Below are positions 1 through 59,368 of a DNA stretch of 64,000 nt, piece by piece; position 1 is the stretch's first letter; every line of letters starts with the position of its first letter. The stretch comes from Pelomyxa schiedti. Its lineage: Eukaryota > Protista > Evosea. Below the pieces are notes generated by a model. That model was not told the origin of the DNA. It saw nothing but the letters and a program-made list of their open reading frames with translations, and did no database searches. The translations under genes were made by a program, and so were the position numbers. The DNA is taken from positions 1-64,000 of the forward strand of contig JAHLWZ010000795.1 of the NCBI GenBank assembly GCA_020536535.1. Direction: 5' to 3'.

Positions 1-2087
1 CCACAACCTGTCGACAGGCCGCAATTCCGCAAGGGGGGTTCCCAGTGGACCTTTGGAAGCGCCACCTGTTGGACCTGGCTCCACTTGTTGCTGAGGGCGG
101 GACACACAAACAACCAGGGACTACCACAACGACGACGGCCGCGCCGCCTCCCGAGTGCGTGGAATGCGGATCACACGACGCGCCGTGGTGGTGCCCAACG
201 TGCGGGGTGTTCCTGTGCAACGATGACAAGGCACACCACTCACGTGCGAGGAAGACCGCCTCCCACAATGTAGCGCTGCGGTGTTTATTTTATATCTATC
301 TCCCTCGCCACCGCGCTTCCCACCAGTCAACCAGTTCACTCACATACACGTGGGAATGCAGGTTTTGACTGTGGATCAAATCAGAGCACAGACGAGTGTC
401 ACACCCACTGCACCCAAACCAGCACTTTGTTCCAAGCATCCACAGGAGGACCTGCGGTTGTATTGCAACACCGACAAGTCACTGATTTGCCGTGACTGCA
501 CGTGTGTGGTCCTTTTTCTTTTGTCTGATTTCGGGCCTGTTGCGTCCTTGGGTTATTCCTAACTCCGCAAACAATATCAGATTGATTGACCACAAGAACC
601 ACGACTTTGTGTTTTCCTCTGACCTGAGCTCCAAGTTCAAGGAGAACATCGCCTCCCTGTGCTGCAAGTTATCATTGCACTTGGAGAAGCTTTCACTTTC
701 GAAACACACTGCAATCGTGTGTGTTTTCCATTTCGGTCCAACTCTACAACAACAACAACAAAAAAAAAGGGATGCTGCCAAAACGTAGAAGAAGTTTCAG
801 AGAAAGTTGAAGCAGAGATACGAACTGAATTTGCCAAGATTGTTGCAGTTGTCAATGCCAAGGAGGCACAGCTGCTCTCGGAACTCAAAACAATCACCGA
901 AACATCAAAAAAGGCACGAACTTGTCTGTCGCACCAATCACACACTGACAATGCGGCGTTACCCCTTCAAGATATTCCAAGAACACATTGAAGGATGTGA
1001 CAACAAGATGAAGGTTGCACAAGAAGCACAAGAATACGCACAACAGGCAACAACGAGGTTCTCTGACCTCCAACTCGTGGCTGTCAATGACACTCTCACT
1101 TCTCGTGTCAAAAAGCTTTGCGATTCACGTGCCGAGAATGACTCTCCAGCACCAAATGAATTGAAGGTATCTCTTTTCCGCATCCAAAAAAATGTAAAAT
1201 GACACAAAAAACGCGAACAGGTGAGGTTTGAGTGTGATTCAACTGCCGTTTGTGGGACAATTTCATCATCACTTGGTCGCCTTGTTCACAATTCAACATC
1301 AGGTTCTCTTGTTCCCAAAGCGGCAACGAGGGAGCTCAAACAACTTGGCTCGATGGTGACCTCGACCACGCCCCGTCAGGCACAGAAGCTGTTTGTTGAC
1401 AACACAACCGGAAAAGTATACTGGGGCAGTCACTTCCACACTACACAGCTGACGGAGTTTGAAAGCATGACCAGCTTCTTCAACAACACAAACCCAAGGC
1501 AATTCACACTCGAGGACCCCAGTGGCACATACCAGGCAGTGCACAACGGCCACGTGTACTGCACCCCATACGACCAAGCCACAATGACCAAGGTGCGTGT
1601 GAGTGACGGGTCAACGGTCGCAACTGCCTCGCTCCCAAACGCCGGGCACACAAACCAATCAACGTGGAGCTGGGGTGGAGCCACAAACATCTGCTGGTAT
1701 GTTGATGCAGGGGGTGTGCTGTTCGTGGTCTATGCACCACGACACAACGGCAACATACACATCACGAGGGTGGACCCTGACTCCCTCGCCATCTTGCAGA
1801 CTTGGGAGGTGCCCCGTATCAAGAGGAAGACTGGCTTTGCGTTTGTTGTGTGTGGGAGGTTCTACTTTGGAAAGTCGCACAACAGCAAAGAAATCGACGG
1901 GGTGTTTGACACCATCACTGGTGTTTATGATGGCACTTACAGAAACTCACTCCCAACATTTGGCAAGTACGTGAGGTTGACCTCCTGGGTTCCATCAACA
2001 AACCAGCTCATCGTTGTTGATGCACCCGACAACTCAGGCACAGACTCAGGGTTCCGCGTCTTCCTCATTGACAATGCGGCTCTGTGA
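1..2087 (+). CDS. TRIM-like protein (RING remnant, B-box1, B-box2, coiled coil) with C-terminal olfactomedin-like domain; 5' partial, multi-exon
   Basis: Frame is open from the window start (TTCRQAAIPQGGFPVDLWKRHLLD, resembling a RING C-terminal end). B-box1 CVECGSHDAPWWCPTCGVFLCNDDKAHH; B-box2 CSKHPQEDLRLYCNTDKSLICRDC..DHKNH across an intron; helical coiled-coil exons. The last exon 1221-2087 has OLF-like motifs (VHNGHVYC, LPNAG..STWSWGGATNICWYVD, GNIHITRVDPDSLAILQTW, FAFVVCGRFY). Confidence 0.8.
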
Positions 2088-10213: not shown

Positions 10214-13200
10214 ATGGGATCAACGTCAAGTAGCAGCAAGGGAGAAGCTGTGCGGGGCGTGGTAGCCGAAAAACCTACCGTGGTGTCGCCCTCGCCTTAC
10301 GTAGCAGATTCTCAGGACATATCATCGGGAGCGTTTTTGTGTGACTGCTGCGGGTGTGTGACATTTCGTTGTTGTTTGTTGTATTTATGTGCGCCAGTGG
10401 ATCGACTTCTTTGGTGGGGCTTTTAATTGCTTGTTTTGGTTTTGGTTTTTATTTATTCTATTTTTTATTTTTTTTCCCCTCGCTCTGTGTAATGATTTGC
10501 ATGAAACAGGGAGAGAATATATCACAGGAATGTACGTTACACATGTTGTGAGTGCAGGAATAGACTGGAGTCTATCAGTTTCGACATTTGTGTGGCGTGC
10601 ATGGGCAACAACAAATTTTGGGAGAAACACCTGGAGGAAATTCACCCCGGAAAACAATTTTCCCCGCTTGTACTTGATCCTTCTGTGATTCTTACACCTA
10701 ACGCACAACGCACATGTGCAGCAGAAGCTTTACGTGCGTGCATGCTCCTGTTCCGTGAGTGCCCTCTATTTGCTATTCGGTGCACTTTGAGAGATCCATC
10801 TAATGATGTTGCTGGTGGAAGTGCTTCACCTCTTGGCTCGGCTGCATACAGCTGGGTTACTTACCAGGAAGTCTACAGTGCCTCCCGCTCACTTGCAAGC
10901 AACATGATTGTAGAGTGTGGACTAAAACCGCAAATGAAAGTTGCACTGTTTGCTGGCAACTCAGTAGGTTGGTGCACTGTATGTTTTGCCTGTATTTTCG
11001 CTGGAGCTATTCTCGTTCCGCTTCCTGCAGGGAAAAGTGCAGGGGAGTTGGGCTCTCAATGCGTTGCTGACTGTGAACCTAGCATACTGTTTTGCACCCA
11101 TGAGACTGCAGAACCTGTTTGCAAAATTGTGGAGGCCGTTGAGTCTGTGCGATGGGTTGTTCTTATTGATGATACACCTCAAGAAAAGGAGAGAACTTAT
11201 GCTCAACTCAATACTTCATGCACTAGTATTTGTAATGCCCGTGGAGGGAAGTTAGTATGCCTCAGTGACCTCACCTCAATGACATCCTCAGCGTGGACTG
11301 AAATTGTCACCCGCCAGTTGGATGATGTCATGATGCTAATGTACACCTCTGGCAGCAGTGGCAAGCCAAAGGGCGCAATGGTTCCTGACCGATATGTGCA
11401 TACAGACTTAATGAAGCTTGCCCGGGGCCTGCAACCAGTTATCCTACTATTCATGCCTCTTGCTTTTTCTTCCCAATTCCGTATGTTAATTGGCTCCATG
11501 GCTGGCTGTGGGAAGCTCGTCTTTAGTAGTGGGAACGCAGGTACACTCTTAGAGGAACTCCGAGATATCAAACCTACATTCATACAAGCACCACCTTGTG
11601 TGTGGGTTTCTCTTCACTCTCAATTTTTAGCAGAAATGGAAAGATTATGTATTGGGAAGACAACAAAAGAAGAACGACATATTGTCAAGGAACAACTCCG
11701 CAAGAATTACTCGAGCTATTTTGGTAACAAGCTGTCTGCAATAACAACTGGAGGAGCACCAACTCCACCACACGTCATGAAGTGGTTGTACAACACTTTC
11801 TACTCTTGCGACGTTCATGAGGGATATGGAGCAACAGAAGTTGGTGGCATTTCTCGTAACGGTTATTTATTACCGGGAGTGGAAGTGAGACTACAAGACT
11901 GCCCCGAAATGGGATATTTCTCAACTGATACTCCACCAAGAGGAATCTTATGGGTAAGGACTACTGAGATGATGCTGGGGTATTTCAACAACCCGCGGGA
12001 TACCAATGAGAACTTCTCTTCTGATAATTTCTTCTGTACTGGAGATGTTGTTGAATACGAAAAAGACAAAAGGGCAGTCCATATTATTGACCGCGCAAAA
12101 TTTGCAGTGAAGTTGTGCCAGAGTTTGTGGGTACAACCAGAAGCCTTGCAAAAAGTGTTCTGTAAGTCTCCTCTGGTTACAGACGTTTTTGTCTATGCTG
12201 ATAGTTTCCTTCCCTGTGTACTCGCTGCAGCAGTGGTAAATTTTAATGTTCTTAGACAAAGAGCAGGAAGTCTTGGAATCACTGAAACTTTTCCAGATAC
12301 AGTTCTCTGTACAACCCCAAGCGTAGTTTCTCTAATTCGTGCTGATTTTATTCTTCTGGGATCACAAGCCAACCTTCTTCCACACGAAATTCCTCGAGTT
12401 GTTTTATTGGAATCTGATGCTTGGACCACTGAAAATGGCTTCTTAACACCCACAATGAAAAAGAATCGTAGGGTCCTATCTGAAAAGTATGGACCCATTC
12501 TAAAAAGTATGTATGAAACATCTTTTGACGTAGAAGTAGCAGATTCTGTTCAGCTGTCCCCCCCTGGCAACCACTTAGTCGAGTCAACTGATGATGCATT
12601 CTTTGCACAAGCAAATCAAGTGATGGAACGTATTCTAGGTGCTGGCTCTTTTGGATTGGATGCACCACTCAAAACTGTTGGAATTGATAGTGTTACAGCA
12701 GTGAGATTGTCTGCCGTGCTCAACAAGATTTTTGACCTTCGGACACCGTTGAGCCCACAATCATTTCTTGATAGTAAAATTACTCTAAGGCAACTTCTCA
12801 AACGCCACCGAGATGAAAGACTGCACTCCACTTCAAATTCCCCCTTCGATTGGGCTTCTGAATGTGAGCTGAGTATGGCAGATTTATATCCGTGTTCTCC
12901 CCAACCATATCCATGTTCTGGGTCTTTTTTTTTGACTGGCGCCACAGGATTTGTTGGTTCCTACATCCTGCAAGCATTAATTGCGAATACAACTTCCCAA
13001 GTTTTCTGCCTCGTTAGAACTACAAATGGTGTGCCACCTTGTATCAGACTGGAACAACAACTGTCTAAGTATAAAGTCAATTTACCCAATGGCGTCAAAT
13101 GTTGCGACATTTCCAGTTTTACTTCCAGTGACCGTATTATTTGTTTTGGCGGCGATATTTCTGAGTTCCATTTTGGACTGAAAGAGGCGGAATGGAATTT

Positions 13201-14307
13201 ACTCGTAACTCAAGTCACCTGTATAATACATAATGCTGCTGTAACGAGTAGTATACAACCATATTCTCAACTTCGCGCTCCTAATGTGCATGGAACTGTA
13301 CAAGCTATTAAGCTAGCCTGTTCGGTTCCTTCATCCAAGTCTCAAGCAATCCCCCCTAAAAGGCTTGTATATGTGTCATCAATATCTGTGTATGAGGCAC
13401 AGGAATTATCAAGAGGAAAGTCCCTGAAGGAGAGGGTTATTTCAGAGTGCGGGCATGATATGAACGCTTACGGGAGAACAAAAAGAACAAGTGAGATCTT
13501 GATTAACCATGCCAGAGAGCGTCTTGGACTCGATGCAGTTAGTAAGTCCTGCGTACGTACCGATAAAGCCTGATGTTCATTACACTCTCTCTAGTGTGTA
13601 GGTTGGGGACAGTCGCCGGAAGTTGCATGACTGGGGCTTTGAATTCCTCCGATACAGTTAATCGCTTACTGGGCACGTTTTATCAACTTCGGGCCGTGCC
13701 CTATCTCACCTCCTCTGGTGATGAAAAACCTATCATTCCAATGGCTCCCGCGGAGTGGGTTGCCGAATCCATTTGCAAGATCGCTATTGACAGAGATTCC
13801 TGCAAGCTTGGGGTATTCCACATCGTCGGGCCGAGCGTAACTCTTTCTGCATGTGCCACTGCACTTGAATCGGTACTGCGTCTTCAAAGCCCACAACAAC
13901 AGAATTCCGCAGAATCAGTACCGGCAACATCACCCGATCCGAAGGTGAAGAGACTACTTTACCGCGAATGGAGCCACCTCATGTACAAAACAGAAGAATG
14001 TGCCCTATGGCCCATGAAGGCATCCTTCTGTCACTGCGGAGTAGGTGACGGAATCACGCCGTGCCACTGTCAAGGACTCCCGTTTTTGCCGGAATCCCAG
14101 GTTCTGGACCAAACCAACACTCAATCAATACTTCTTGCTCCCTCCCAATCACCACCAAACTGCTGTCCCACCGGTGGCCACAATATCAATCCTTCGCCAT
14201 CACCATCGCCATCACCATCACCGGCACAGAATCCCGCCGTATCACAGTCCACGCTGGCAAAGTACTTCTTGTTCCTCTCCGAACATCTGGAATTCATCCA
14301 TGAATGA
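10214..14307 (+). CDS. Carboxylic acid reductase-like NRPS-type enzyme (adenylation, carrier protein, thioester reductase)
   Basis: A domain: YTSGSSGKPKG, GYGATE, TGDVV..IIDRAK, PTMKKNR. Carrier GIDSV (phosphopantetheine Ser). Reductase: LTGATGFVG, HNAA, NVHGT, YVSS, YGRTK, and CRLGTVAG after a gtaagt..ctag intron near 13544-13593. N-terminus MGSTSSS. Confidence 0.9.
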
Positions 14308-38067: not shown

Positions 38068-41000
38068 CTAGAAAAGGGCAAACTTGGGCCCAACGCACTT
38101 TGTTACCCAAGGCACCTGGGTTCCTTGCGAGGTTTTCTTCACTTTCACAAGTGTCTCCTTGATAAGGTCATTAAATGGTGTTCCCGTTGGCACACTATTC
38201 AACTCTGCCAAGAAAAGTAAGTAGTTCATGTAATGAAAGGAGTCAGTACCTTCAATGAGGCAGGCAGTGAATAGAGTGTTTTTTTGTGGGCCTCCGTCCG
38301 GTTCGGTGTGAGGCAATGCTGTCTGGGGTGCTGCACGGAATGTTTTTTTTTTGTAAGATTGTGGTATTCAATTGAAGTGAGATAACCTGAACTCCTGGAA
38401 TAGACAAGGTAATAGCCGGCCGGAAGATTGTTTTGGACTAGGCGGTGCATGCGGCCTGCTTTATCAAAAAGAGGCCCAGAGTGTGTCTGGAGAGAAGTAG
38501 CATTAATGGAAATGGAGAAAACTCTCCGCGGAGCACACCCATTGTCCCCCAAGAGGGTCGTTGGAAGGGAATGCATCAATTACTACTATGACTAAGTGAG
38601 ACCTTGCAGCAAGGTTGTCCACTACATTTCCAAGTACGGCAACTTCACTGCCCAAAAATAAACAGTGATCCGAGTCCATTTGTTTCGTATGCCCGGCAAA
38701 GTAAAAAATGGTGGCAAGCTGCTCGTTTGTAGGTCACTACAAATTCCTGAAAAGGTAAGGCACACCTTATTGGTATCTGACAGGGCAGGCAGTGTGCCTA
38801 GGAAATCCTGAAAAGTACCCTTCCATGTGCCCCAGTCTGAGTTTGTTTTACATGTTACCTTGAAGTGGCATTGCGTTTCCAGAAACTACCAGGAAAGTAG
38901 CGAAGGGAAGATGAGAGAAAACATAAAAAAGATAAAGGCACAAAACTGTAGCAATATCTGTAGAGCCGCTTTCTGGATTTTTTAAGCTATTCCCAACCAC
39001 CAAGGCAAAGCACTCATAACCCAAATCGTGGAGGGTTCTGGCCCCTTTCATTATGAGAAGGTAAGTTTAACAAATTATTATAACGAGGGAGAAGCTCACT
39101 AAAAGTGTCACCAACCATGAAGCTAACTGCTGTATTTAAATCAAGTTGTTCATTTCTTTTGACCATTTTATATTGCCGGTTGTCTACATTCTGGATTTTC
39201 AGCCAGTCACAGAGCTGTTTCTCCTCGGTTGTGAGAATATGAATAAGTGAAGGACTTCTAGTGTTCAATGGAGCAAGTGGTGGTTCCTATTGTTTTCATT
39301 TAAAAAAAACCATGTTGGTTATATGACTAGTGTTTTTGTCATCTTACTCGTGAGTTGCTTGTTCCTCTCTCATCCAGTCCCATCGATGAGTTGGCAATAA
39401 TCTTCCCTGTGTTTGGTGTAGAGGATGTGCTCACTTGTCCACCTATGGGTTCTTGCCTCTGTCTGTTCCCCACATGGGAATAAGGGTCTGTCTGTATACC
39501 ATCACTCACAGCTGAATTCATGCCATTTCCTCTGATGGCATCCTTGGTAGGATCATAGGTACCTTGCCTCACTCCTATATTACTAGTAATGTCAGCCCCG
39601 AGGGTTTGTTGGATAGCTGTGTTTTCAGAATCTTTGGTTATTGCAGACAGTTCTTGGGAATCCCGTTCGGTTACTTTTTTTTTCACTTCATCACGCACCC
39701 AATTTGCAATCCACAGGTGGGTATCCAAAATATGAAATTCCGCTTTTCTACGACAGTTTACCTGTCTCATGCGCAAACGAAGTTTGAGAATGAAGAATCG
39801 GAAAATCTTGTCATGCTGGACCTGAGTTTTCCACATACCGTATGGAAGTAGAAGTAGGTCAAATGGATGTGGACGATTCCTCCCACAAGAAGTAGCAACA
39901 ACACAGAGCACTTCACTTAGTTGTTTCCTGCGCCTGTCGGAAAGCAGTCCTCCACCCTGGACATTCTCATGGGCATTGGTTATTTCAGTGGGCTTGGTTA
40001 GTGAGGAAACATAGTCATCCAATTCCGATAACAAAAACTCCACCTCGGACCCATAGGCTGAGACATCTGCTGGAGACCGGGCTGCATCCCACCCTCCGTT
40101 TATGGCCCAGCCACTGTGGTTCATATGCTGATGCAGCCTCACAATATCGGCAAAGTTCAAGTGACGTTTCTCAGGAACTTCTGGCCGTCTCCCCCTTAGT
40201 TGAGGCGAGTACATCGTCATCTTGTTCGAAATTGGGCATACTAGCACCCTTAGCAAGAATCGGTCGAACAGTGCCCCCTGGTTTGCATCCATTGGAACTT
40301 CATTGCTTGCGGCAAACACAGTATGCAAAGGGAGGTGAATGAGCTCTGTCCCGTCAAAGAAATCACGTTCATTGAGGATTGGGAGGAGGACGGTAAGCAC
40401 CTGCCTCTGTGCCTTGAATATTTCATCAATAAACGCAAACAGAGTATGCTCTCCACACAACTTGTTTTGCTTACAGCGGACCAAAATGTTCCGGTCCAGT
40501 GCCTCCAAATCAATTGTTCCCACCAAATCATCCAACGTCGTTCCAGCATGTAGCACAATGTTGAAGAAACTCCTTTTCCCCACCTCAGTGTGGATCACCT
40601 TGCACACATCGATACAAACGGCGCTTTTCCCAGTCCCGGGAGGCCCAAAAAGTAGCACATGTTGCCTGCAAAGAACTGCAAGCATGCAAATCTTGATTGC
40701 TTCATCGCGTTCAACAAAGGACCTCTCAAGTGCCTTGAACAGTTTATTGAGGCGTTTGCTGAAAGAATCCATCCAATTTGAGCCGCCACTTGCACAGGAT
40801 CCACTGTTTCCCGGCACTAAGAGAATTTCGTCGTTCCACTCCTCTTGGTTTTTGGGTATTGCTGGTTCATCATCTTTATCTTTTGTGGTTGGAACTTTTT
40901 CAGGGACGCCCGCAGTTGCATTCACTGACAGTGCCGTTGTTGGGGAAGATGAGACTGCTTGCGTGGACGTCGTTTCCGTTGTGTGAGATGTTGAACCCTG

Positions 41001-41255
41001 TTGTGTGTTGTTGCCGTCATCGTGTCGAGGCGGCGTACCCTGTGGTACAACTTCCGGCTTCTGCGAACCACTGCTGGCTCTGATCCTCGTAACAGGCGGT
41101 GGTGTTGTTGTTTTGTCATTCCGCTCGATTTCGGGTGGCGGTTGGTTCGCGGTGGAATTTGGGTTGAGCGACGCGGTGGATTCCGCCGACGGCGCAGAAA
41201 TTGAGTGGCTGGGCGGCGCCGCTGATCGGGTTTCGTCTTCTTTCGGCTGAGCCAT
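38068..41255 (-). CDS. RavA/MoxR-family AAA+ ATPase fused to a SAM-like segment and a caspase-like (peptidase C14) domain lacking the catalytic Cys
   Basis: AAA: GPPGTGKS, FIDEIFKA, LNERDF, ASNEVP, LFDRFLLR, SDRR. A phase-0 intron 39347-39287 (gtaaga..caatag) links it in frame to QLCDWLK.., then FALVVGNS-LKNP, FYFAGH, VIDAF, YYLVYS, TLFTACL, QVPW. Confidence 0.8.
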
Positions 41256-43174: not shown

Positions 43175-46100
43175 TTATGTGTTGAGCTTGTTTTTGTAGT
43201 ACCCCATTTCCCTCACCTTCCAAGGTACTTGATCCAGGGGAGCATCGTGGCATCCCTCCCCAACTTTTGGTGGCTGCCGGCATATGCTGCAAATCCCAGG
43301 TGTGCACCTGGTGCTTTCCCACTCAGATTGAGGCACATTGCAAACTGCACATGTCTCCATGCACACTTCACTTCGAGCCTGTTCCATTGTGAGTGTTTTT
43401 CCACACCGCGAGCATTGCCCAGGTGCTCTGGGGCACCTCCCTTTGGCACATGGGCCATGGCACAGGGGACAACTGGTGCAAATGGGTGACTTGACATTTA
43501 GCCCACAGCAGGTGTATATGAACGGGCTCGTGAATATGGTGCTGATTCCAAGTGTGAATGCGGCAAGTGCTGTGTTCTCTGCGTCCCTTTTTTTCTTGCC
43601 CCAGTGCTCATTGGTGGTTATGTGAGGTCCGAGTACCATCTGATGAGGGACCGCCTTCAGTGCGTGATGATAGAGAAGACTAGAATGCGCTGTGACTGTG
43701 CGTTTTTGGCATGTGTAGAGCCGGTGGTGGTTCCATGAACTGAGCGGAACTTTTTGACCGCATTTGCAGTCCTTTCCGGACTGTCCGCATTCGTTTGCCA
43801 AGTGGTTTTCCTCTTCGGGTAAGGAAATCTCCTTCTGGCACCTCTTGCATGTACTCATGCGTTTCGGGCATTCTTTGGTGTGCTCAGTGTACCTTTTTTT
43901 TGGGCCATTCCATATCCCACAGAATTCGCATGTTACTTTATTTTCTTCACACGCGTGTTCCATGTGGTGAGTTAGATCTCTTCTCAAGAATTTTACAGGG
44001 CAAAGTTTGTAGCGGCAGGACACCTTGTAGGAAATACAAATGGCTTTTCCGGCATCCGGTATCAAATGCTCTTCCAGCCCACAAATCGGTACTTTCTTAC
44101 AACAAAAGCTTGCCGATTTGGGTATGGATGCCGAAGTAGCCAAAATCTCTCTTTCTTCAGCAGCTCCAAGAGGACAGCTCCATGAGCAAAGCCGACATTG
44201 CGTTGCATAGTGAGAACCCTGCAGAAGCTCTTTACTTGTGCACAGCTTGGAACAGAACCCACAGGTAACAGATACACAGCTGCGATCACATTTCATCAGG
44301 AGATGAGAACTGTATTCTGTCACGGGTAGCTGTTGCTTACAGTAAGGGCAAACGATGATACTACGTGCACAACCACTCAGAAGGTGTATATCTAAATCGC
44401 GGTATGGCAACCGGATATTACAATTTGGGCATTCTATGAAGAAGTGTTCTCCCCTACATTCATACAGCCAGTGACGAACCATTTCATCTATACGTATACC
44501 GTCACTGCAATAGATGCATGGAATTGGAATCCGTCTAAAAGGGCAATAAGGAATATGCCGGGATAAATCACGCACATGGTCACGGCAAAAAATACATAGT
44601 TCTCTTTCTGGGCAGAATATAGCATGCCTTGTTTCATCACGCTTTTGGAGGTGAAAGGCTTTTTTTTCCTCCTTCATCTTGGAACATAAGGCTGTATACA
44701 GTGCTCCTTCAGCGTAACTCTCCCCACAATCTGTGCGGTCCTTTGCTGAAGTGTAAAGGTTTTTGACTGTGTGATACACACCAGTATTATACATTTCAAT
44801 GCTCGGTTGGTTAGGATATAGCAAACGTGCTTCGTCGTAGGAAACACGAAAGTGAACAGGCTGTGTGCACCCGGGGTTGTAAATACATAGACCTTTTGAC
44901 AGATAGCACTGCCCAGTGATATGTTCAAACATGTATCTCATAACCCCTGTGTAACCACATTGTTGCGGACATGGTTGAACATACTTGGGACACTCGAATT
45001 TCAGGTGGTCATCCAGGAGATGCGCTGGCATGGACTCATAACAGAACTGGCACTGTGCCATATTTACCCCTTCTTCGTGCTGAGTCAATTCCTCCGATAT
45101 CAATTTTATTATAGCAAGCTTGCGCAATTTACCCATTCCCACCAAGTGCTTTCTCTCCATAGGGATAAGATTCTGGAGGTTATTGCCAAAGGTTGTTGAG
45201 GCGAGACTACAATCGGGAGGATTGTTGGTTGGCCTTATTGTTATATGTTCCTTCCAGTGCTGCTTTTCATCCTTCTTCACTACTTGTTGGTTACACATTT
45301 GGCAGGAAACGTAGAAACTATTGCATTGCTGATTTAAGTGCGTTTCCAATTCGGCAAGAGTCATCTGATTAGCTGTACACGCAGGAAAGATACAAGAAAC
45401 TTTGACTGCTGGGCATTGACGCAAGTGACCAGGAAGTTCTCTCATTACGAGGGCCTCACGACAAAGGAAACAAGAAACATTAAAACCTTTACATTCAAAC
45501 TGCAAGTGCTTCAGCTGGTGTTTCAATATAATATGTTTTTGGCAAAAAACGCACTTCCTGAATGCTTTGGCGCATTTACGCATATGAAAACCAAGGGAAA
45601 TGTTTGCAGTACTACCATTTGTGGTAAAAAAGCACACTGGATCCATACAGTGGGGACAGGGGAGTGGAATCGAACACGAAGCAGATTTCAAAAAATGTTC
45701 ATGTAGAGTTCCAAGAGTAAAACCATTGGCGCCACACAGAGTGCAGGATACATGAAATTGGGTGCAAACACTGAGGTGTGCAGCAATTTCATGTCTAAGA
45801 AATTTCATGTGACAGAACGGACAGTGTAGAACAAAATTTAGGCATAATCGTTGGAGATGGTCCCGAAGTACCCGTGGTCCACAACAAGAAGCTGAACAAT
45901 AAGGGCATGAATTGTCATTCTCAACAGAATTGTATACATCATTCTCAAGTTTGAGACAACAGTCTTTAGCTTTACAAATTTTGAACCTTTGTTCACACTT
46001 GAGCTTGTGGTCAGACATTGTATCCAATTGGAACAGTTGCAAGCAGTTGTGACACATTACACGGGGATTTGTGCACTGCGCAACATGCTCGCTCTTCTTT

Positions 46101-49100
46101 TCACGGGCTGAGCGAGGGGTCGGCGGTAGAGTACAGTTACAGTCTGCACATGTAATTGGAACTGCAGTACAGTCGCTATCCAGATGGTTTGCCATAACCT
46201 CAGTCGGAATTAGACTTGCGCAGTGCTTGCATTTCTCTAGAGGATCGCAGAAATGGTTGGTGCAAGTGTCAAAAGTATTCCTGCATATAAGACAGAATCT
46301 TTCTGCGCTGCAAACATGTGGATTCCCTTTAAAGCATTTGCATTTCTCACAAATGTCCTCTGGTTTCCCACTTGGACACCTAGTGAGGTGTTCACGTTGG
46401 TCTTTTCTCTGTATTGGACATAGGCAGTTTGGGCATTTCCAGTGTCCCTCGCAGTCTGTATTATAATGCTTAAACCTCATTGAAGGCTTAATCTCTGTCC
46501 TACAGTACTCACAAAATGTAAGAGTTTCCTCCCGTTTGGGGCAAACCTCGGCCATGTGCCTTTCTTGGTCAACAACCCTTACTTGTTCATTGCATTGGGT
46601 ACATTCTACCGTGGTCCTTAGGGCACAGAGCTTTACATGCCTGCTGAAAATGAATGGAGGAACATCTGTTTTGCATACAGGGCATGCAACAGGTAGGTTT
46701 TTTATACACGGTACATCTGAGAGCCATGGGTCACTTAAATCTGTTGTGGTCAGAGCAAATGCCTCTTCTGGAGAAATGGTATGGCGCAGATCGAACTTCC
46801 GAGACACATCATTTACTAGAGAACGGATTTCCTCTCGAGCAGGATCTTTCATTTCTTGATCAGGGAGTGTGAAGGCACTTGGTACAAGGGTATCAAGCAT
46901 ATTGGTCGAACCATCCTTCGTACTGCACTTAATAAGGGGTTGCTCATTCTCCTCAGCGAAGAAGATAGAGTTATCACTGTCCACATCATCGGGCTTATTC
47001 CCATTTTTTTTCCACTTCAGTACAAATTGAAGCAACTAAAGTTGGTGGTGTTCAACACAACTGAGCAAAAAAATATGAGTGAAAAGAAAGACTACCTTTT
47101 TGCAGATATCAATTATAAGAGTTTTCAAGTTCACATTCATTGACCCTTGGAGCTCATGTCCAAACAGACTGATATCAATCTTAACCATTACAACCACAGA
47201 CTTATCGTCAGAGGTAACTTCCCCCATTACTTGTAAGTTATTCACAACCAATACGCCCTCACATAGGGTCTTCAATCTTGTAAGTAGAGAGTCAAGAAAT
47301 TCTCCTCCTACTGCGTCAGCAACAAAGGAAGCCATTTGAATTGCACCAACTATCAACCACTTTACGAACCCAGGGGCCCACTTAGAAACTCTCCTTTGGG
47401 CTCTTTGTAGTGCCTTCTTGCATACTTTGAAAATCTTCCCAATGCAGTAACGCAATCCACCCACAATTGCAGATACAACCATGGCAGCATTCAGATTCCG
47501 AATACCAAGTTCAGCACGGATGTTTGGTACAATCTTAGTCCAGGTGACTTTCAAACTGCCAGATAACTCAATTTTATTGTTTTGTTCTTCTGCTCTAGTC
47601 ACTTCAATAGCGTTATCTTCAGATTGGGGATCTTCTCTACTCAAAGAAAGTCGGACAGCAACATTCAAAGATGGTCCCTGACCTTGTCTGCGTTCAAAAC
47701 CAATTTTGGTGCCGATGGTAAGACCAAGACTCTTTGGAAGAATAGAAACTTTGGCATCAAAAAGAAACGCAACTTCCCTGGTCCCTGTATTCACGGTCAA
47801 GTCGACTGAGAGCTCTTTGTTTGAGCCTCCAAGTATAAATAGAACAGTTGATCCCACTTTACATGTCCACTCTTGAATGAGGAGCTGGAGTTTAAGGAGA
47901 AGAGATGGGGAAGTAAAATCAATAGTATTTGCAAGTGAACAGAATAAAATTTTGGCATCTAGACCGAGCCATGACATCTGAGCTACAAAGCCTAAGAACA
48001 TATTCTCCCTTTGTAATAGGGGAATGCCTTTTCGGCCTGTGCTCTGCTGTATAATAGATAGGAGAGAGTTCTGGTTCTGTGCGGGCTTGATTTCCATTGA
48101 GGGGATACTTGTGAGCTCTTCCCTATCAAGCTTGATCAGTAGACCTAACTCTTTGACTTGTGGGAAGGCATGATCGAGAGTCTCAACATCCTTGTAGGAG
48201 CATCCAGTGAATAATCGGACAATTGAGCCCAATGTTACTTCTTTACAAAATAGGTAAATAGTTGAGATCGTAGGTTGTCCGGCAATCAATGAAACCCTAA
48301 GTAAAGCTTCAAATGCTGGCTTTGGCCCATCATCCCAAAGGGCTCGTATGGCACCACCAAACATGAATGAAATGGTGAGGGGTGCTGAAATACTAAGTGC
48401 CCCTCGTATTCCATAAACAGCAAGGTGTTTCAATTTGGGAATAAATAGAGAAAGAGGAATTCCTGTCTCACGATTACCATCCAGCTTCAGGGAAGCCGTA
48501 AGTGAAGGTGGAATTAATAGCCCTTTGAGAGAAGCTCTCAACTTCAGATCATGTGCAAAGAGAAGACAGGTCTTGAGTGAAATTGATAGAGGATTGACAT
48601 CAATTCTCAAGGTACAAGTACCAGCTTTTAGACCAGCACAAGGAAGTTCAAATTTCTTTAAAGCAACCATCATATATGCAGATGAGTCTGCAACTACAAA
48701 ATCAGCTTTAAAAGGTTCCCCTGTAAGCCCAATCCATTCAAAAAGTTGCCCAGTTAGAGAAATAGAGACAGCGAGGCAAAGAAAGGAATTTTCCTCCCGT
48801 AAAAACAAGTGCCTTGCACCATCAGTGCATGAGGAAACCAGATTTGTGATTTCAGTACCATCGTCAGTAATTTGTGGTTTTGCACCATGCAACCACTCAA
48901 ATCGCTCGGGAGATACATCAATAGGTAGAGAAGGCAATGATGTACCAAATAAAACAGATACGATTCTAGATAAAGACAGATTGCTGAACTCTAACATAGC
49001 ACATGTTCTGGACATATGGTGCAGTAAACAGGCCTTGCAATCAATTACTTCAGAAAGGCCTTTTATGGAAACACAAAGAGAAAAAGCAAAGGAAGATGAA

Positions 49101-50491
49101 AGCAAAGATTGCGCTGAAGAGTCCTTCACCTTTTGCAGCTGCAATAATAATGTGTAGTCTCGGAGAACTATCTTTTTCAGAATTTCTTGGGTGTCCCCAT
49201 TTCTATCTTCAAAGATGCCAAGCTCATGTAAAATGTCAAGAAGGCTAATACTATTGGCATCTGGTTTTTCTCCGATTGTTTTTAACATAGTTGGTTTGCG
49301 TAGATGCAAGAATAAATGTGGATTACTATCCCCAAGATCAAAACCAGACTCCATATCCAGAGGGATGCCAAAGAGATGAATACCTTTGACAGAAATTGTC
49401 AAATGTTTCACATTCAAACCCTGGCCACCGCTCACTTCAAGTTCGATATTCATATGAAACAGGGTTGCTTCAGGCAATTTCAATATTTCAGTCTGTGTAA
49501 CCCTTTGCAACACATCTGCTACGGTGTGGAGGCCAAGTATCTCGTCCATAAACTTCACCACTTGCCCCATTCGTACTCGAATTTTTCCTTTGAAACATAG
49601 CAGTGACCTTGAGCCTGACTTTGTCACCACACTTGTTGTTGGTGGATGAGAAAGAAGTGGCCTTGAACCCTGCGGTATCGGAAACGAGCTTTGATCCACA
49701 GCAGATTGGTTACTGTCATTCACCATTTTTGTGGCCATCTTGAGATGCAACCACTCACCAAAACTGACCTTAAATAGCTCAATCTGTATTTCAGGGGGAG
49801 ATCCGAATTGAATGTCAGCATCAAGGGAAACTTGGATCTCAGCCTCTGCGATTTTCTTAAAAAGCTTCTTCACACCCACAAGGGCCTCTCTCGGGAAAGC
49901 ATGGCCAATATGTTCGAAAATCTTCCTGAGAGATGCACCCTTGCATGTCAGCTTCGCACCAGTTTTGGAGACTAGGACTGAAGCAAATGGATCCCCTTTC
50001 GCTTTTTTTCGTTTTGGTCCTTCTCCTTCTGTTCCTGGTTTCTTTTTTTCCCGTTCTTCCTGGGGTGGAACTTTCCACATCTGTTGAGAACATGTCCCGC
50101 CATCTACCTGATCACTACTGCTTCCAGCTCCATGAATTTCGTCATGAGGTGCACTAAACTGCTGAAGCAGTGAAATTTTCGCAGCCCATGATACAGAGTC
50201 ACCAACCGAGACCTTCTCGAGCGTGCAGCTCACGTCCTGGTCCCGGAGTCCAAGGAATTCCAGTGTAGTTCTGCACTGAAATTTGAGCCCTTCTTCGCAA
50301 TAGAACCAATCATCTCTGACTGGAACAAGCTGTGCTGGTTGCGGGGCTATGGTTATGTCTTCCTCTTCATCTTCTTCCTTGAAGGTACATGAAGAAGCTG
50401 TTAAATGTGGTTGACATGCGTGCTGGGAAACGCATTTATTTAGTCGTTTTCTGTTTTCTTTTCTTTTTTAGGAGTGTTTAATACCTTGCAT
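43175..50491 (-). CDS. Giant (~2,390 aa) protein: ~1,100-aa beta-strand-rich region, about 30 TRAF-type zinc fingers, and a hydrophobic/Cys-rich tail
   Basis: ORFs 47036-50233 and 43175-47035 are in the same frame and are joined by a 60-nt phase-0 intron 47095-47036 (gtagtc..ctttag). Start exon ATG CAA G at 50491 with intron 50484-50398. Repeated CxxC-x(10-12)-H-x(3-5)-C units. Confidence 0.8.
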
Positions 50492-53604: not shown

Positions 53605-55521
53605 TCAAGTCCAAGGCAAACCATTTGTGAATAGAAGGGGTCCCATGAGGTTATAGGCCAAAAAATAGAACAGTATAAGGCGAGACGGAATTGTACTTCC
53701 AGCCCGGGCTTGACCTTTTTTCCCTTTTGTATCATCCCTGAAGTCACAGAATTTTGTGGCACACCACCAATAGAGGGGAGGCACTGCTGACAAAAATCTA
53801 GTGATGACTTGTACGTGCATGAAGGTGATAGCGAACGCAACAAGGAACAGCCAGTAACACACATAGGGAAGCACTTGTGGTGATGACAAGTAGGGATTGA
53901 GGCAGTTGCTACCAAAGGCAATGGTTGAGTGCTTGGTGGTGGTTTTTTGTTTAGTTGCGAATGCCTTGTGATGCACTTGTGCCACATAAGTTCTGAGATA
54001 TGCCACAATTCCACATAGAGACATAATTACCATAGGTGTGGCTAATAAGAAGTTCGGAAGCTGCTTGGACTGATAGTAATGAAAGAATCCTTGATTCCTG
54101 AATGAATATAAGAAAAAGGCAGGCTGTCTATTCCCCTTGTAGTATGAGAAGTTACCAGTAATAGCTCTGAATAAATCCATAAAAGCCAGGTATTGTAGAA
54201 TTGCACCATGACATGTCCACTGGAGCGGGATGATCAACTGAGCAATAGCGGTACCGTCCATACAGTTGTATACCAATGTAGGGAAGGGACATTAAACCAA
54301 CGCGGAAAAGTGTGAACAACCAATGAGCACCAATTTTCTGATTTTGAAGTGAGGATTTGTAAAGGGAGACATAGTAGATACCATCAATCTGTGATACACA
54401 GTGGGAACGAGGAGATTGGAAAAAGGGAAAAAGGAATCCACAGCTTCAAACAATAAGAACCCAGCACAAACAATCCCGTTCCCACGCGTAGCTACCGTGA
54501 GTGCAAAAAAAACAGTACTCCCTGAATAAGGAGTTCAAGGTTAAAAAACGAATGGCGTGGCAGTACCTACCCCAAAACCTCTTTTTGTGCAGCATCAAAC
54601 AAGCACCAAAAAAAAGCATTGCAAAAGGGCTTTCTGTGTATCTGCAGATGTAAATTACTAAAGCAGTTGGAAAGTGAGAGCCCCACATTGAAGACATGAA
54701 TATGTTGGCAGGATTCAAACAAAATAATATGCTTGAACAGAATGCAATTTTCTCATTTTTGAGAACTGCCAGTGATAACCTGAGGCGTAAGTAAAGTAAT
54801 ATGATGGTTTTTTAAACCCTCATATAAAAGGGCTCAAAATACTTTCACTTGTATCATACCAGTAAAAGAGTACTGAGGCTAAAATAAAACAACAGTTTGT
54901 AAACAAAAAACCCGAAAGCATTGTGATTGTAAACTGGTTTGCTGGGAGCCATGAAAGCCCTATCAAAGATATAATTCAGTGCAGGCTTTCCACAGTAATA
55001 TTAACAAAGCAAGAGCAAACGAATTTCAATTTTTCAAATTCATCCACCCTAGGATGGACACACATAACTGGGCTACCTTTTGACAAAGCCCTAACGCACA
55101 AAGGCAGCAACGGGAAAAAAGCGTGGGCCTGCTCGGTCTCATACCCCCGCTCCGAAATCCCCACAAAGTACACAGCGTCCCACGAGTGCAGCCCCTTCAG
55201 CCCCGCGCCTACGCCCCAGTCCACCCACGACCCGCCCCCCATAATAATGATTCCCCCCTCTCCCTCTCCCTCTCGCTCTCCCTCGCGAGGGTTGCTGCCA
55301 CTGCGGAATGGCAGGCTCCCCGATGTGTCATAGTCGTCCACAAGGGAGTCCAGCAACACGCACGCCAGAAGCACCACGAGCCGCACCGACCCCGCCACCC
55401 CAGCAACTCTCCACGCTCTCGACAACATCAATGATGGCGTGACGTCGACTTCTCGGATGGAGGGTGGCACAGTTGTGCTTTGTGCCAAAAGATATTGCAC
55501 CACAACGCCTACTGTAGGCAT
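53605..55521 (-). CDS. PIGV: GPI mannosyltransferase II
   Basis: WDAVYFVGISERGYETEQAHAFFPLLP, QLPNFLLATP, FMHVQVITRFLSAVPPLYW, and multiple transmembrane segments. Confidence 0.9.
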
Positions 55522-57661: not shown

Positions 57662-59368
57662 TTAAGCGTAGAACTGAGCTACAAAGGCTACAGAGTCTGA
57701 ATTGGGTGATATGGCCGACTTGAGTTCCTCAATGGTGCAGAAGGTGGGCCACTCAAATGCCATGGTTGACGATGGCGCTTCTTGGTTGATTGTCATCTCA
57801 CACCGTTTCAGGGCTCTTTCTCTCGAGGGTGAAAGGAGTGACAGAGCGGCCTTCAGAACCAGTGGGAATCTCAAGTCCTCATGCGATTTGATTTGAATGT
57901 CCAGGTTGCACAGCTCCAGTGCAAGCAAAACATTGCCATCTTTGTGTGACAGAATGAACCTGAAGGGGTACCCATGCTCATGGGTGTGAAGCATGTGGCT
58001 TCTGACATTTGCGGATCCCCTTCCAGCTAATTTCTGAGCATTACGTACAATCCAAGTGATGCCAGAAGCTCTTGATACCTGCTCTGTCAGTAGCGCTATA
58101 GTTCGCTGTTGCTCATTCACACACTTCACAAGGCAAGAGAAATGGAATTGCTGTGACGACGCAAGGTGCTCGGCATGAAGCTTGCGCTTTGCGGTGAAAG
58201 TACATCCAGTAACTTCACATTGAACAGTTGTTTCAGGGCAGTCATCTCTGACGTGCTTTTCCATTGTACTTCTAGGGGAACTTACTCCGCATCCACTTGG
58301 GCACGTGAGAGGAAGTAATGGGCAAACGGAACGGTGCTCTTCAAGCTTCCCGGATTCTATTTCAGTAACACCACAGGATAATGGGCAAGGAACAAGCTGA
58401 TGTGGGCATGCTTTCTGGTGATCACGCATACTTTCTCTTGGGAGTGTTGCGTCACAACCTTTAAATGTGCACGCAATAGGTTCCTTTGGACATATTCTAC
58501 GGTGGGTAGCAAGTGCTTCAAGACTAAATACGGCAGGGCAGCCCTTTGGACATTTCAATTGTAGTCTGCAGTTACTAAGAGCGAAACAAAAGCAGTGGGA
58601 TTTCTTACTTGTTGTAGGAATTTAAGACGATCCTAGGAAGTGGCTTCATTGTCTTTCGGGTTATACTCTTCCTGCAGGTTGGGCAAGCGCTCCTCCCTGA
58701 TCTCAACATGCTATCAATGCAAGAGCGGCAATACACAGTAGCCTGCAAGAAATAGAAGGTTAAAACCCCAAAGATAGCCGCACCACCAAAAACAGACCCA
58801 CAAGCAAGCACAAGCAATCCCACAAGCACAGACACAAAGCCAAAACCTCGTCGTTCTCAGCGTGATACACGGGGTCCGTGGCCAACCTCAAGCACACAGG
58901 GCACAAGAACTTTTCCCTCTCAGCCTGGTCAACAAACAGCTCCAAGTCCGGCACCCTCGCCTCTCCCTCTCCCTCTCCCCCGCTCCCGGACCCGCCCCCG
59001 CCCCCGCCCCCGCCCCCGGCCCCCTTCTCCTTCCCCCCTTGCCGCTGCGTCCCCCCCTTGCCGCCCTTGCCTCCCCATCCCCATCCCCCTGCCCTCTTTG
59101 GCGCCGATGCAGCCCTCGTGTAGTCCTCGCGGTCCCCCACGACGTAGCAGTCGTCGTCGTCGCGGCCGCGCGGGGATCTCGGCATGTAGTCGTACTCGGA
59201 GGAGCCCGTGGAGGACGACGAGGAGAAGCCGTCGCGGGAGTCCTCCTCGCTGCCCCACCCCCCGCCGCGCTCCCCCTCCGAAGACGACGAAGACGACGCG
59301 TAGTGGTGCTTGTCGTGATAGTGTCGGTCTCGGTCTCGGTCTCGGTCTCTGTCGCGGTCTCGGCTCAT
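57662..59368 (-). CDS. TRAF-like protein (RING, TRAF zinc fingers, MATH-like domain) with RD/Ser/Gly-rich N-terminus
   Basis: CPVC..YCRSC..CPTC RING-like; 4-5 zf-TRAF units (CPKGC, CTFKGC, CPLSC, CPSGC, CEVTGC); coiled segment; ITWIVRN..GYPFRFIL MATH-like strands. Confidence 0.85.
59325..59363 (-). repeat. (CGGTCT)n coding microsatellite encoding RDRDRD
   Basis: Four perfect units plus degenerate units immediately after the start codon at 59368. Confidence 0.9.

Follow-up and report, generated by a model that had tools for sequence, protein, structure and literature searches.

The gene considered here lies on the minus strand of a 64,000-nt window from Pelomyxa schiedti (assembly GCA_020536535.1, contig JAHLWZ010000795.1, positions 1-64000 of 164 kb), and its predicted product joins a MoxR-type ATPase to a caspase fold in which the catalytic cysteine has been replaced. 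Pelomyxa is an anaerobic amoeba that hosts several intracellular prokaryotes. From its N- to its C-terminus, the 936-residue protein would comprise a disordered region, a RavA/bpMoxR AAA+ ATPase, a disordered linker of ~110 residues, a small conserved domain and a caspase fold with Phe in the position of the nucleophilic Cys. We lean, with modest confidence, toward the view that it is a ring scaffold bearing docking modules and not a protease. An earlier note, made from the letters of the window, had recognized the fusion and proposed a different mechanism for it; we consider its claims below together with the evidence that bears on them.

The ATPase is encoded by an open reading frame (ORF) of 638 codons (41255-39339) with the 3' end TCA CGA|GTAAGA TGA, and the first codon of the downstream tail ORF is TTG. 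An acceptor, caatag|GAA (39288-39287|39286), lies in phase with the ATPase ORF, and excision of 39347-39287 (61 nt, GT...AG) fuses the two frames. The 638-aa ORF is 100% identical to the GenBank protein P0001 ('AAA family ATPase [Pelomyxa schiedti]', 860 aa), which uses the same splice (...TSNSR|EPPLAPLN...), and a paralog, P0002, has the same architecture. The proposal that this intron joins the two ORFs, made from the matching phase, therefore holds, as does the predicted length of ~930 residues: the homology-guided coding sequence gives 936 and ends at 38068, where the note had placed it. Since spliceosomal introns are present, the gene must be nuclear and not from a bacterial symbiont. Bacterial or symbiont contamination is ruled out by these introns together with the kinesin, Ras, Kelch and TRAF genes of the contig, and an assembly chimera by the occurrence of the same architecture in P0002 on another contig. 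We conclude from the genomic comparison that the fused, spliced nuclear gene is real, its splice junctions being predicted ones.

With P0002 as a guide, the gene was modeled as eight exons and seven introns, with the stop codon at 38070-38068; each of the introns is 45-61 nt long, has canonical GT-AG borders and keeps the frame. Exon 1 (41255-39348) encodes residues 1-636 without interruption, is 100% identical to P0001 residues 1-636, and contains the disordered S/T/P-rich N-terminus, the AAA+ core, the lid, a helical extension and most of the S/T/G-rich linker. Intron 1 (GTAAGA...CAATAG) is in phase 0 and leads to exon 2 (39286-39100), which holds the end of the linker and the small conserved domain from SLIHIL (residue 649) onward and matches positions 1-56 of our tail profile, A1 (E 1.5e-17). 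The caspase fold starts in exon 3 (39044-38947; profile 57-91, E 1e-10) with strand beta1, ALVVGNS (39006-38986), and continues through exon 4 (38885-38766; E 3.2e-13) into exon 5 (38718-38539; E 3.1e-26), where the His-site FYFAGHT (H781, 38691-38689) and the Cys-site VIDAFPS (Phe821, 38571-38569) are located. Exon 6 (38486-38387; …LPAGYYLVYSRSS), exon 7 (38330-38250) and exon 8 (38204-38068; …PTGTPFNDLIK…KFALF) are all absent from P0001. Exon 6, for which the GT-AG borders and frame were checked, is found by tblastn with P0002 (E 2.8e-4) and by the profile (194-234, E 3.4e-12), and exon 8 in the same two ways (E 1.5e-9; profile 241-289, E 3.5e-20). After residue 831, P0001 splices from 38539 over 559 nt into an exon at 37979-37892 that has no counterpart in its relatives. 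The three exons that it skips are kept in four paralogs, and judged by this homology the C-terminus of the GenBank model is wrong.

P0002 (860 aa; contig JAHLWZ010000601.1, locus L001) is 66% identical to the 936-residue protein over the AAA+ region, 37% over the small domain and 40% over the tail. Introns 2, 4, 5 and 7 are identical in residue and phase in the two genes, and intron 6 (38386-38331) occurs only in the present copy. Intron 3 falls two residues from an annotated P0002 intron that is not of the GT-AG type (L001:12095-12153, plus strand). The annotation of this third P0002 intron is ambiguous owing to a repeated dipeptide; when both borders are moved 6 nt upstream, a re-reading done only by eye, the intron becomes GT-AG, the encoded Val-Leu is unchanged, and the two intron 3 positions coincide. 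Intron 1 lies in a linker that cannot be aligned between the paralogs, the equivalent linker intron of P0002 being 52 nt long.

The position of intron 1 also bears on whether the locus makes one protein or two. An in-frame TGA (39341-39339) lies 6 nt into the intron, past the donor, and retention of the intron would yield a 638-aa ATPase-only product; together with an internal ATG in exon 2, this would suit a gene whose ATPase ends at the TGA and whose tail is expressed separately, the fusion being an artefact of annotation. We regard such an arrangement as highly improbable. The frame of the linker stays open for ~100 poorly conserved codons in both paralogs and closes just past the donor, and the small conserved domain starts 5' of the sole internal ATG of exon 2 (the Met of ...YKMVK...), both of which make a separate start of the tail less likely. 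The module stands at the C-terminus of a larger protein in all five genes that carry it, and the GenBank annotators independently picked the same splice.

The bpMoxR/AAA_5 core of the ATPase (residues 168-344, 40754-40224) matches PF20030 (9e-35, 120 bits against a gathering cutoff (GA) of 27) and PF07728 (2e-19, 70.4 bits, GA 22), and the AAA lid (residues 432-484, 39962-39804) matches PF17868, AAA_lid_8 (1.3e-07, 31.8 bits). The nearest solved structure is Escherichia coli RavA (3NBX, E 1.6e-24), to which every motif aligns: Walker A GPPGTGKS (residues 204-211, 40646-40623), Walker B FIDEIFKA (275-282, 40433-40410), sensor 1 AASNE (315-319), the Arg finger FDR (330-333) and, in a second aligned stretch formed by the lid, the SDRR of sensor 2 LSDRRRK (39944-39924). 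This part of the protein is thus, by alignment, a MoxR/RavA-class AAA+ ATPase with a full set of catalytic motifs, which agrees with its first description as RavA-like and intact. It is not RavA proper, scoring 99.3 bits against a cutoff of 681 for the NCBIfam equivalog NF010054, and a Pfam scan found no match to the LARA or RavA C-terminal domain (PF20265, PF12592). Nor did the core match NB-ARC or NACHT, as a STAND core might; it belongs to the MoxR clade.

Since neither sequence nor profile searches of the PDB returned a match to the tail, its fold was demonstrated by profile-profile alignment with hhalign and by structure comparison. Pfam Peptidase_C14 is matched by the tail of P0002 at 22.5 bits (GA 21.4; profile 105-232) and by the partial tail of P0001 at 19.4 bits, short of the 21.4 cutoff (profile 3-126). 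When profile A1 was run against 5.8e9 proteins, just three bacterial proteins matched, each with a full Peptidase_C14 domain, and hhalign of A1 with one bacterial Peptidase_C14 protein gave 96.5% probability and an E of 9e-10. In a MAFFT alignment with bacterial C14 sequences the motifs ALV(V/I)GN, FY(F/Y)AG, (I/V)(I/L)DA, LPxGYY, PGTPF and Q(V/C)P(W) line up. An AlphaFold2 (AF2) model of the P0002 tail from the single sequence had a predicted local distance difference test score (pLDDT) of 35 and became usable after rows for the paralogs and bacterial C14 proteins were added; the resulting 8-row alignment gave a pLDDT of 66.9 and a predicted TM score (pTM) of 0.61. The top Foldseek matches of this model in the PDB are MALT1, Trypanosoma brucei metacaspase 2, procaspase-1 and c-FLIP(L), with E from 2e-5, and VIA-align of model residues 52-271 gave Z 14.8 for MALT1 (173 residues, 2.9 Å) and Z 14.6 for c-FLIP(L) (179 residues). 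On these sequence and model comparisons the tail is a bacterial-type caspase fold; the caspase-like tail of the earlier note is therefore recovered by Pfam, hhalign, Foldseek and VIA.

The catalytic apparatus within that fold is a different matter. The note had matched the tail to caspase-like p20/p10 motifs, but the Cys motif is missing: Phe821 occupies the column of the catalytic Cys in bacterial DACRN, and VIDAF is found instead of DAC. In P0002 and in three further tail proteins, P0098, P0099 and P0100, this column has Pro, Phe, Phe and Val, respectively, and in this alignment none of the five members of the family keeps the nucleophile. At the site of the GHG His of bacterial C14 proteins, H781 is present here, and Gln, Thr, Ile and Thr occupy the position in P0002, P0098, P0099 and P0100; near the site, no Cys at any other position is common to the five. 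The tail is thus, as read from its residues, probably a pseudo-caspase and not a protease. This finding counts heavily against the mechanism first put forward, a one-polypeptide apoptosome in which six competent caspase domains, brought together on the ring, would be activated by induced proximity. A genuine caspase fold, an intact ATPase and the retained H781 are all as such a device would need; with Phe at the nucleophile site, its replacement in the other four proteins as well, and a paralog of the same architecture that has neither His nor Cys, protease activation by clustering is nonetheless the least probable of the explanations we weighed.

Loss of the dyad could instead mean that the tail is a decaying, functionless relic of a once-active caspase, and its faster divergence compared with the ATPase would fit such decay. 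We consider this scarcely probable. The exons are all intact and in frame with canonical splice sites, and the noncatalytic motifs PTGTPF, GYYLV and KFALF are kept across five genes. The ratio of nonsynonymous to synonymous substitution (dN/dS), computed by the method of Nei and Gojobori, is 0.30 for the tails of P0099 and P0098 and 0.23 for those of P0099 and P0100, values for sister tails which indicate that the pseudo-protease domain is being maintained.

All five tail proteins conserve the ~55 residues ahead of the caspase fold. The note had called this segment SAM-like and ascribed polymerization to it, for which we found no support. Pfam scans of the small domain returned no SAM family at E values up to 10; the best PDB match of a small-domain profile is the ASK3 SAM domain, over 30 residues and at a nonsignificant E of 1.2; and single-sequence searches matched unrelated proteins. 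Within the AF2 model of the P0002 tail the domain is predicted as beta-alpha-beta-beta (pLDDT ~80), as opposed to the five-helix bundle of a SAM domain. We therefore set the SAM reading aside for want of a consistent signal in these comparisons.

An all-length phmmer search of 1.84 billion representatives found the tail in five Pelomyxa proteins only: the two MoxR fusions, P0001 and P0002, and P0098, P0099 and P0100. Pfam places it behind a URGCP/RHD3-like large GTPase in P0099 and behind an MMR_HSR1-type small GTPase in P0100. P0098 (542 aa) starts partway through a stretch homologous to P0099 residues ~640-740, and this model probably represents, with its 5' end missing, a second P0099-like GTPase-tail gene on the same contig, JAHLWZ010000900.1 (L007:10001-11958, L003:10001-13520). 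The five genomic copies of the tail have exon breaks at similar profile positions, and on the domain matches the tail is a module that has been reused behind two kinds of GTPase. A region search with P0099 and a six-frame scan of the window and the fetched loci with the hidden Markov model (HMM) of the tail brought up no further members, and none of the other 95 bpMoxR homologs carries the tail (0/95). In GenBank, P0099 bears the name 'e3 ubiquitin-protein ligase trip12'; its only Pfam matches are to the GTPase and the caspase-like domain. The annotation of P0100 stops short at its C-terminus (…SPFSDLKKQVPR), and the genomic sequence of contig JAHLWZ010000807.1 still codes for its last tail exon at L006:11121-11273 on the plus strand (profile 243-289, E 1e-16). 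Beside P0100 stand an 811-aa gene with a faint RsgA_GTPase match and a 777-aa gene without a Pfam match (L006:5427-7958, 11384-13764); the HMM scan found no caspase-like tail in either, and these neighbors may form a tandem GTPase family.

The two halves of these genes differ in intron content. The nucleoside triphosphatase (NTPase) halves are single long exons (window 39348-41255; L003:10005-12578; L006:8059-10341), and the ~1.2-kb region past exon 1 (window 38068-39286, with ~900 bp of tail coding sequence) is divided by 6-7 introns. An intron-rich tail cassette may thus have been added to NTPase genes that had few introns and were perhaps recent acquisitions.

We considered the origin of the ATPase in the context of the 97 homologs retrieved, nearly all of which are prokaryotic. 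The few other eukaryotes with this family are dinoflagellates, with Clp_N fusions, and Cymbomonas. In a quick maximum-likelihood tree the two Pelomyxa proteins form a pair with 99% support on a stem of 2.5 substitutions, with no sister or donor group, and a single clade of all eukaryotic sequences, including those of dinoflagellates and Cymbomonas, is not rejected by the approximately unbiased (AU) test (p 0.755). Transfer of the ATPase from a prokaryote to a eukaryote is plausible on this phylogenetic evidence.

In the nearest bacterial relative, from Fusobacterium, a vWA gene overlaps the ATPase gene downstream, as expected for MoxR. No vWA gene was found among the annotated genes within 10 kb of either Pelomyxa paralog, among the long ORFs of the window, or by phmmer with the bacterial partner vWA; the note's remark that no such gene is visible in the window thus holds for the annotated neighbors within 10 kb and for the long ORFs. 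In a rival account the protein is a MoxR remodeling chaperone that serves the assembly or maturation of a housekeeping complex, and the tail a mere substrate-targeting adaptor, a covalent substitute for vWA with no role in immunity or death. RavA and other MoxR proteins are assembly chaperones that need an adaptor, and a vWA gene adjoins the gene of the bacterial relative but neither Pelomyxa paralog, both of which speak for it. On the other side, the same tail is found on GTPases whose types are usually linked to immunity, and it is lineage-restricted and fast-evolving (40% identity in the tail vs 66% in the AAA+ region), a pattern commoner in conflict systems than in housekeeping ones. We judge this account unlikely, though a serious contender.

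The contig neighbors of the gene encode kinesin, Kelch, F-box-Ras and TRAF zinc-finger proteins. TRAF-type zinc-finger genes, both on the minus strand, flank the ATPase gene: one at 43175-50491, of ~2,000 aa, has a faint zf-TRAF match, and one at 57665-58558 has clear zf-TRAF and zf-TRAF_2 matches. TRAF domains are signaling adaptors. Elsewhere in the window, an ORF at 1221-2084 (plus strand) encodes an olfactomedin-like domain (7e-31), and one at 53608-54276 (minus strand) encodes a PIG-V mannosyltransferase domain (7.6e-29).

We suggest how a scaffold with docking modules could work. By analogy with RavA, the ATPase would assemble into an ATP-dependent ring, and the ring would display six flexible, noncatalytic caspase-fold modules. 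Active caspase-like proteases could bind to or dimerize with these modules, in the way that caspase-8 does with c-FLIP, or else target proteins could bind there. The modules may also stand in for the separate vWA protein that serves bacterial MoxR as its adaptor. In other words, the protein would act as a threshold-setting scaffold in an immune-like or symbiont-control pathway. Several considerations weigh against this view. The hexamer is carried over from RavA by analogy only, the binding partner of the tail is hypothetical, and every splice junction is a prediction from the genomic sequence. The AF2 model is that of the P0002 tail, and its 8-row alignment, which includes bacterial caspases, biases the result toward a caspase fold, so that the model cannot count as evidence separate from the sequence comparisons. 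The dN/dS values come from the GTPase-linked sister tails and not from the 936-residue gene, and the H781 kept in the latter leaves some room for residual chemistry that does not involve Cys.

Comparison with known systems places the scaffold within a recognizable theme. In the MoxR-vWA ternary conflict systems described by Kaur, Burroughs, Iyer & Aravind (2020; PMC7159879), of which the beta-propeller type defines Pfam bpMoxR, the MoxR protein is stand-alone and encoded beside a vWA protein; where caspase-like domains occur, they belong to the vWA, VMAP or iSTAND component, MoxR itself never having one, and for the beta-propeller type the authors report 'no conventional effector modules'. The Pelomyxa ATPase resembles these systems in matching the bpMoxR profile well above threshold, and in several of them caspase-like domains belong to the same effector network; it differs in being covalently fused to an inactive caspase fold, in a spliced eukaryotic gene with no adjacent vWA or propeller gene. 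With E. coli RavA (3NBX, 6Q7L), whose partner is ViaA, it shares the motifs of the AAA+ core and lid, and RavA hexamers are the basis for the proposed ring; unlike RavA, it falls far under the equivalog cutoff, has no detectable LARA/RavA C-terminal domain, and has no ViaA-like gene nearby.

On the caspase side, c-FLIP(L) (3H13, 3H11) is likewise a caspase fold without the catalytic Cys, and it heterodimerizes with an active caspase on an oligomeric platform, as proposed here for the Pelomyxa modules; identity is, however, ~10%, and c-FLIP(L) is recruited through DED domains and has no fused NTPase. MALT1 is the best structural match and the bacterial Peptidase_C14 'orthocaspases' are the sole significant sequence relatives, with ALVIGN, FY(Y/F)AGH, (I/V)(L/I)DA, PTG and GKQxPW as shared motifs, but these are active Cys proteases with DAC(R), whereas the Pelomyxa family has DAF, DAV or DAP. 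Apoptosomes and inflammasomes (Apaf-1 or an NLR with caspase-9 or caspase-1) are also NTPase oligomers that concentrate caspase-fold domains. They use STAND NTPases, noncovalent CARD/PYD adaptors and active caspases, in contrast to the MoxR-clade AAA+ ATPase, covalent linkage and inactive fold seen here. The gene thus appears, from its domain content, to be a variation on the theme of an NTPase-plus-caspase-fold platform, and the MoxR-pseudo-caspase fusion itself is apparently undescribed. The literature searched on bpMoxR, on caspases in Pelomyxa and on MoxR-caspase fusions in eukaryotes yielded no description, nor did the database searches, in agreement with the note, which knew of no described eukaryotic protein of this architecture.

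A wider hypothesis, more speculative and rather unlikely as it stands, is that Pelomyxa has built an immune-like or symbiont-control signaling layer in which a single pseudo-caspase adaptor tail is common to three unrelated P-loop NTPases, namely a MoxR AAA+ ATPase, a dynamin/URGCP-like GTPase and a small GTPase. Oligomerization of each NTPase would lead its tail to recruit and switch active paracaspase-like proteases of the amoeba, as heterodimers in the manner of c-FLIP. A MoxR ring would here replace the STAND NTPase, and the logic of a death platform would have evolved independently.

NTPase platforms that concentrate caspase-fold domains are central to cell death and immunity in animals, and bacterial parallels have been predicted. 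In this amoeba, a single gene appears to couple a MoxR ATPase of bacterial type to a caspase-fold module by direct fusion, and the public model of that gene can now be corrected. If the module is indeed a regulatory adaptor, Pelomyxa would offer a tractable protist case for the combination of pseudo-caspases with NTPase thresholds, and a case for the domestication of horizontally spread parts of conflict systems in a host filled with endosymbionts.

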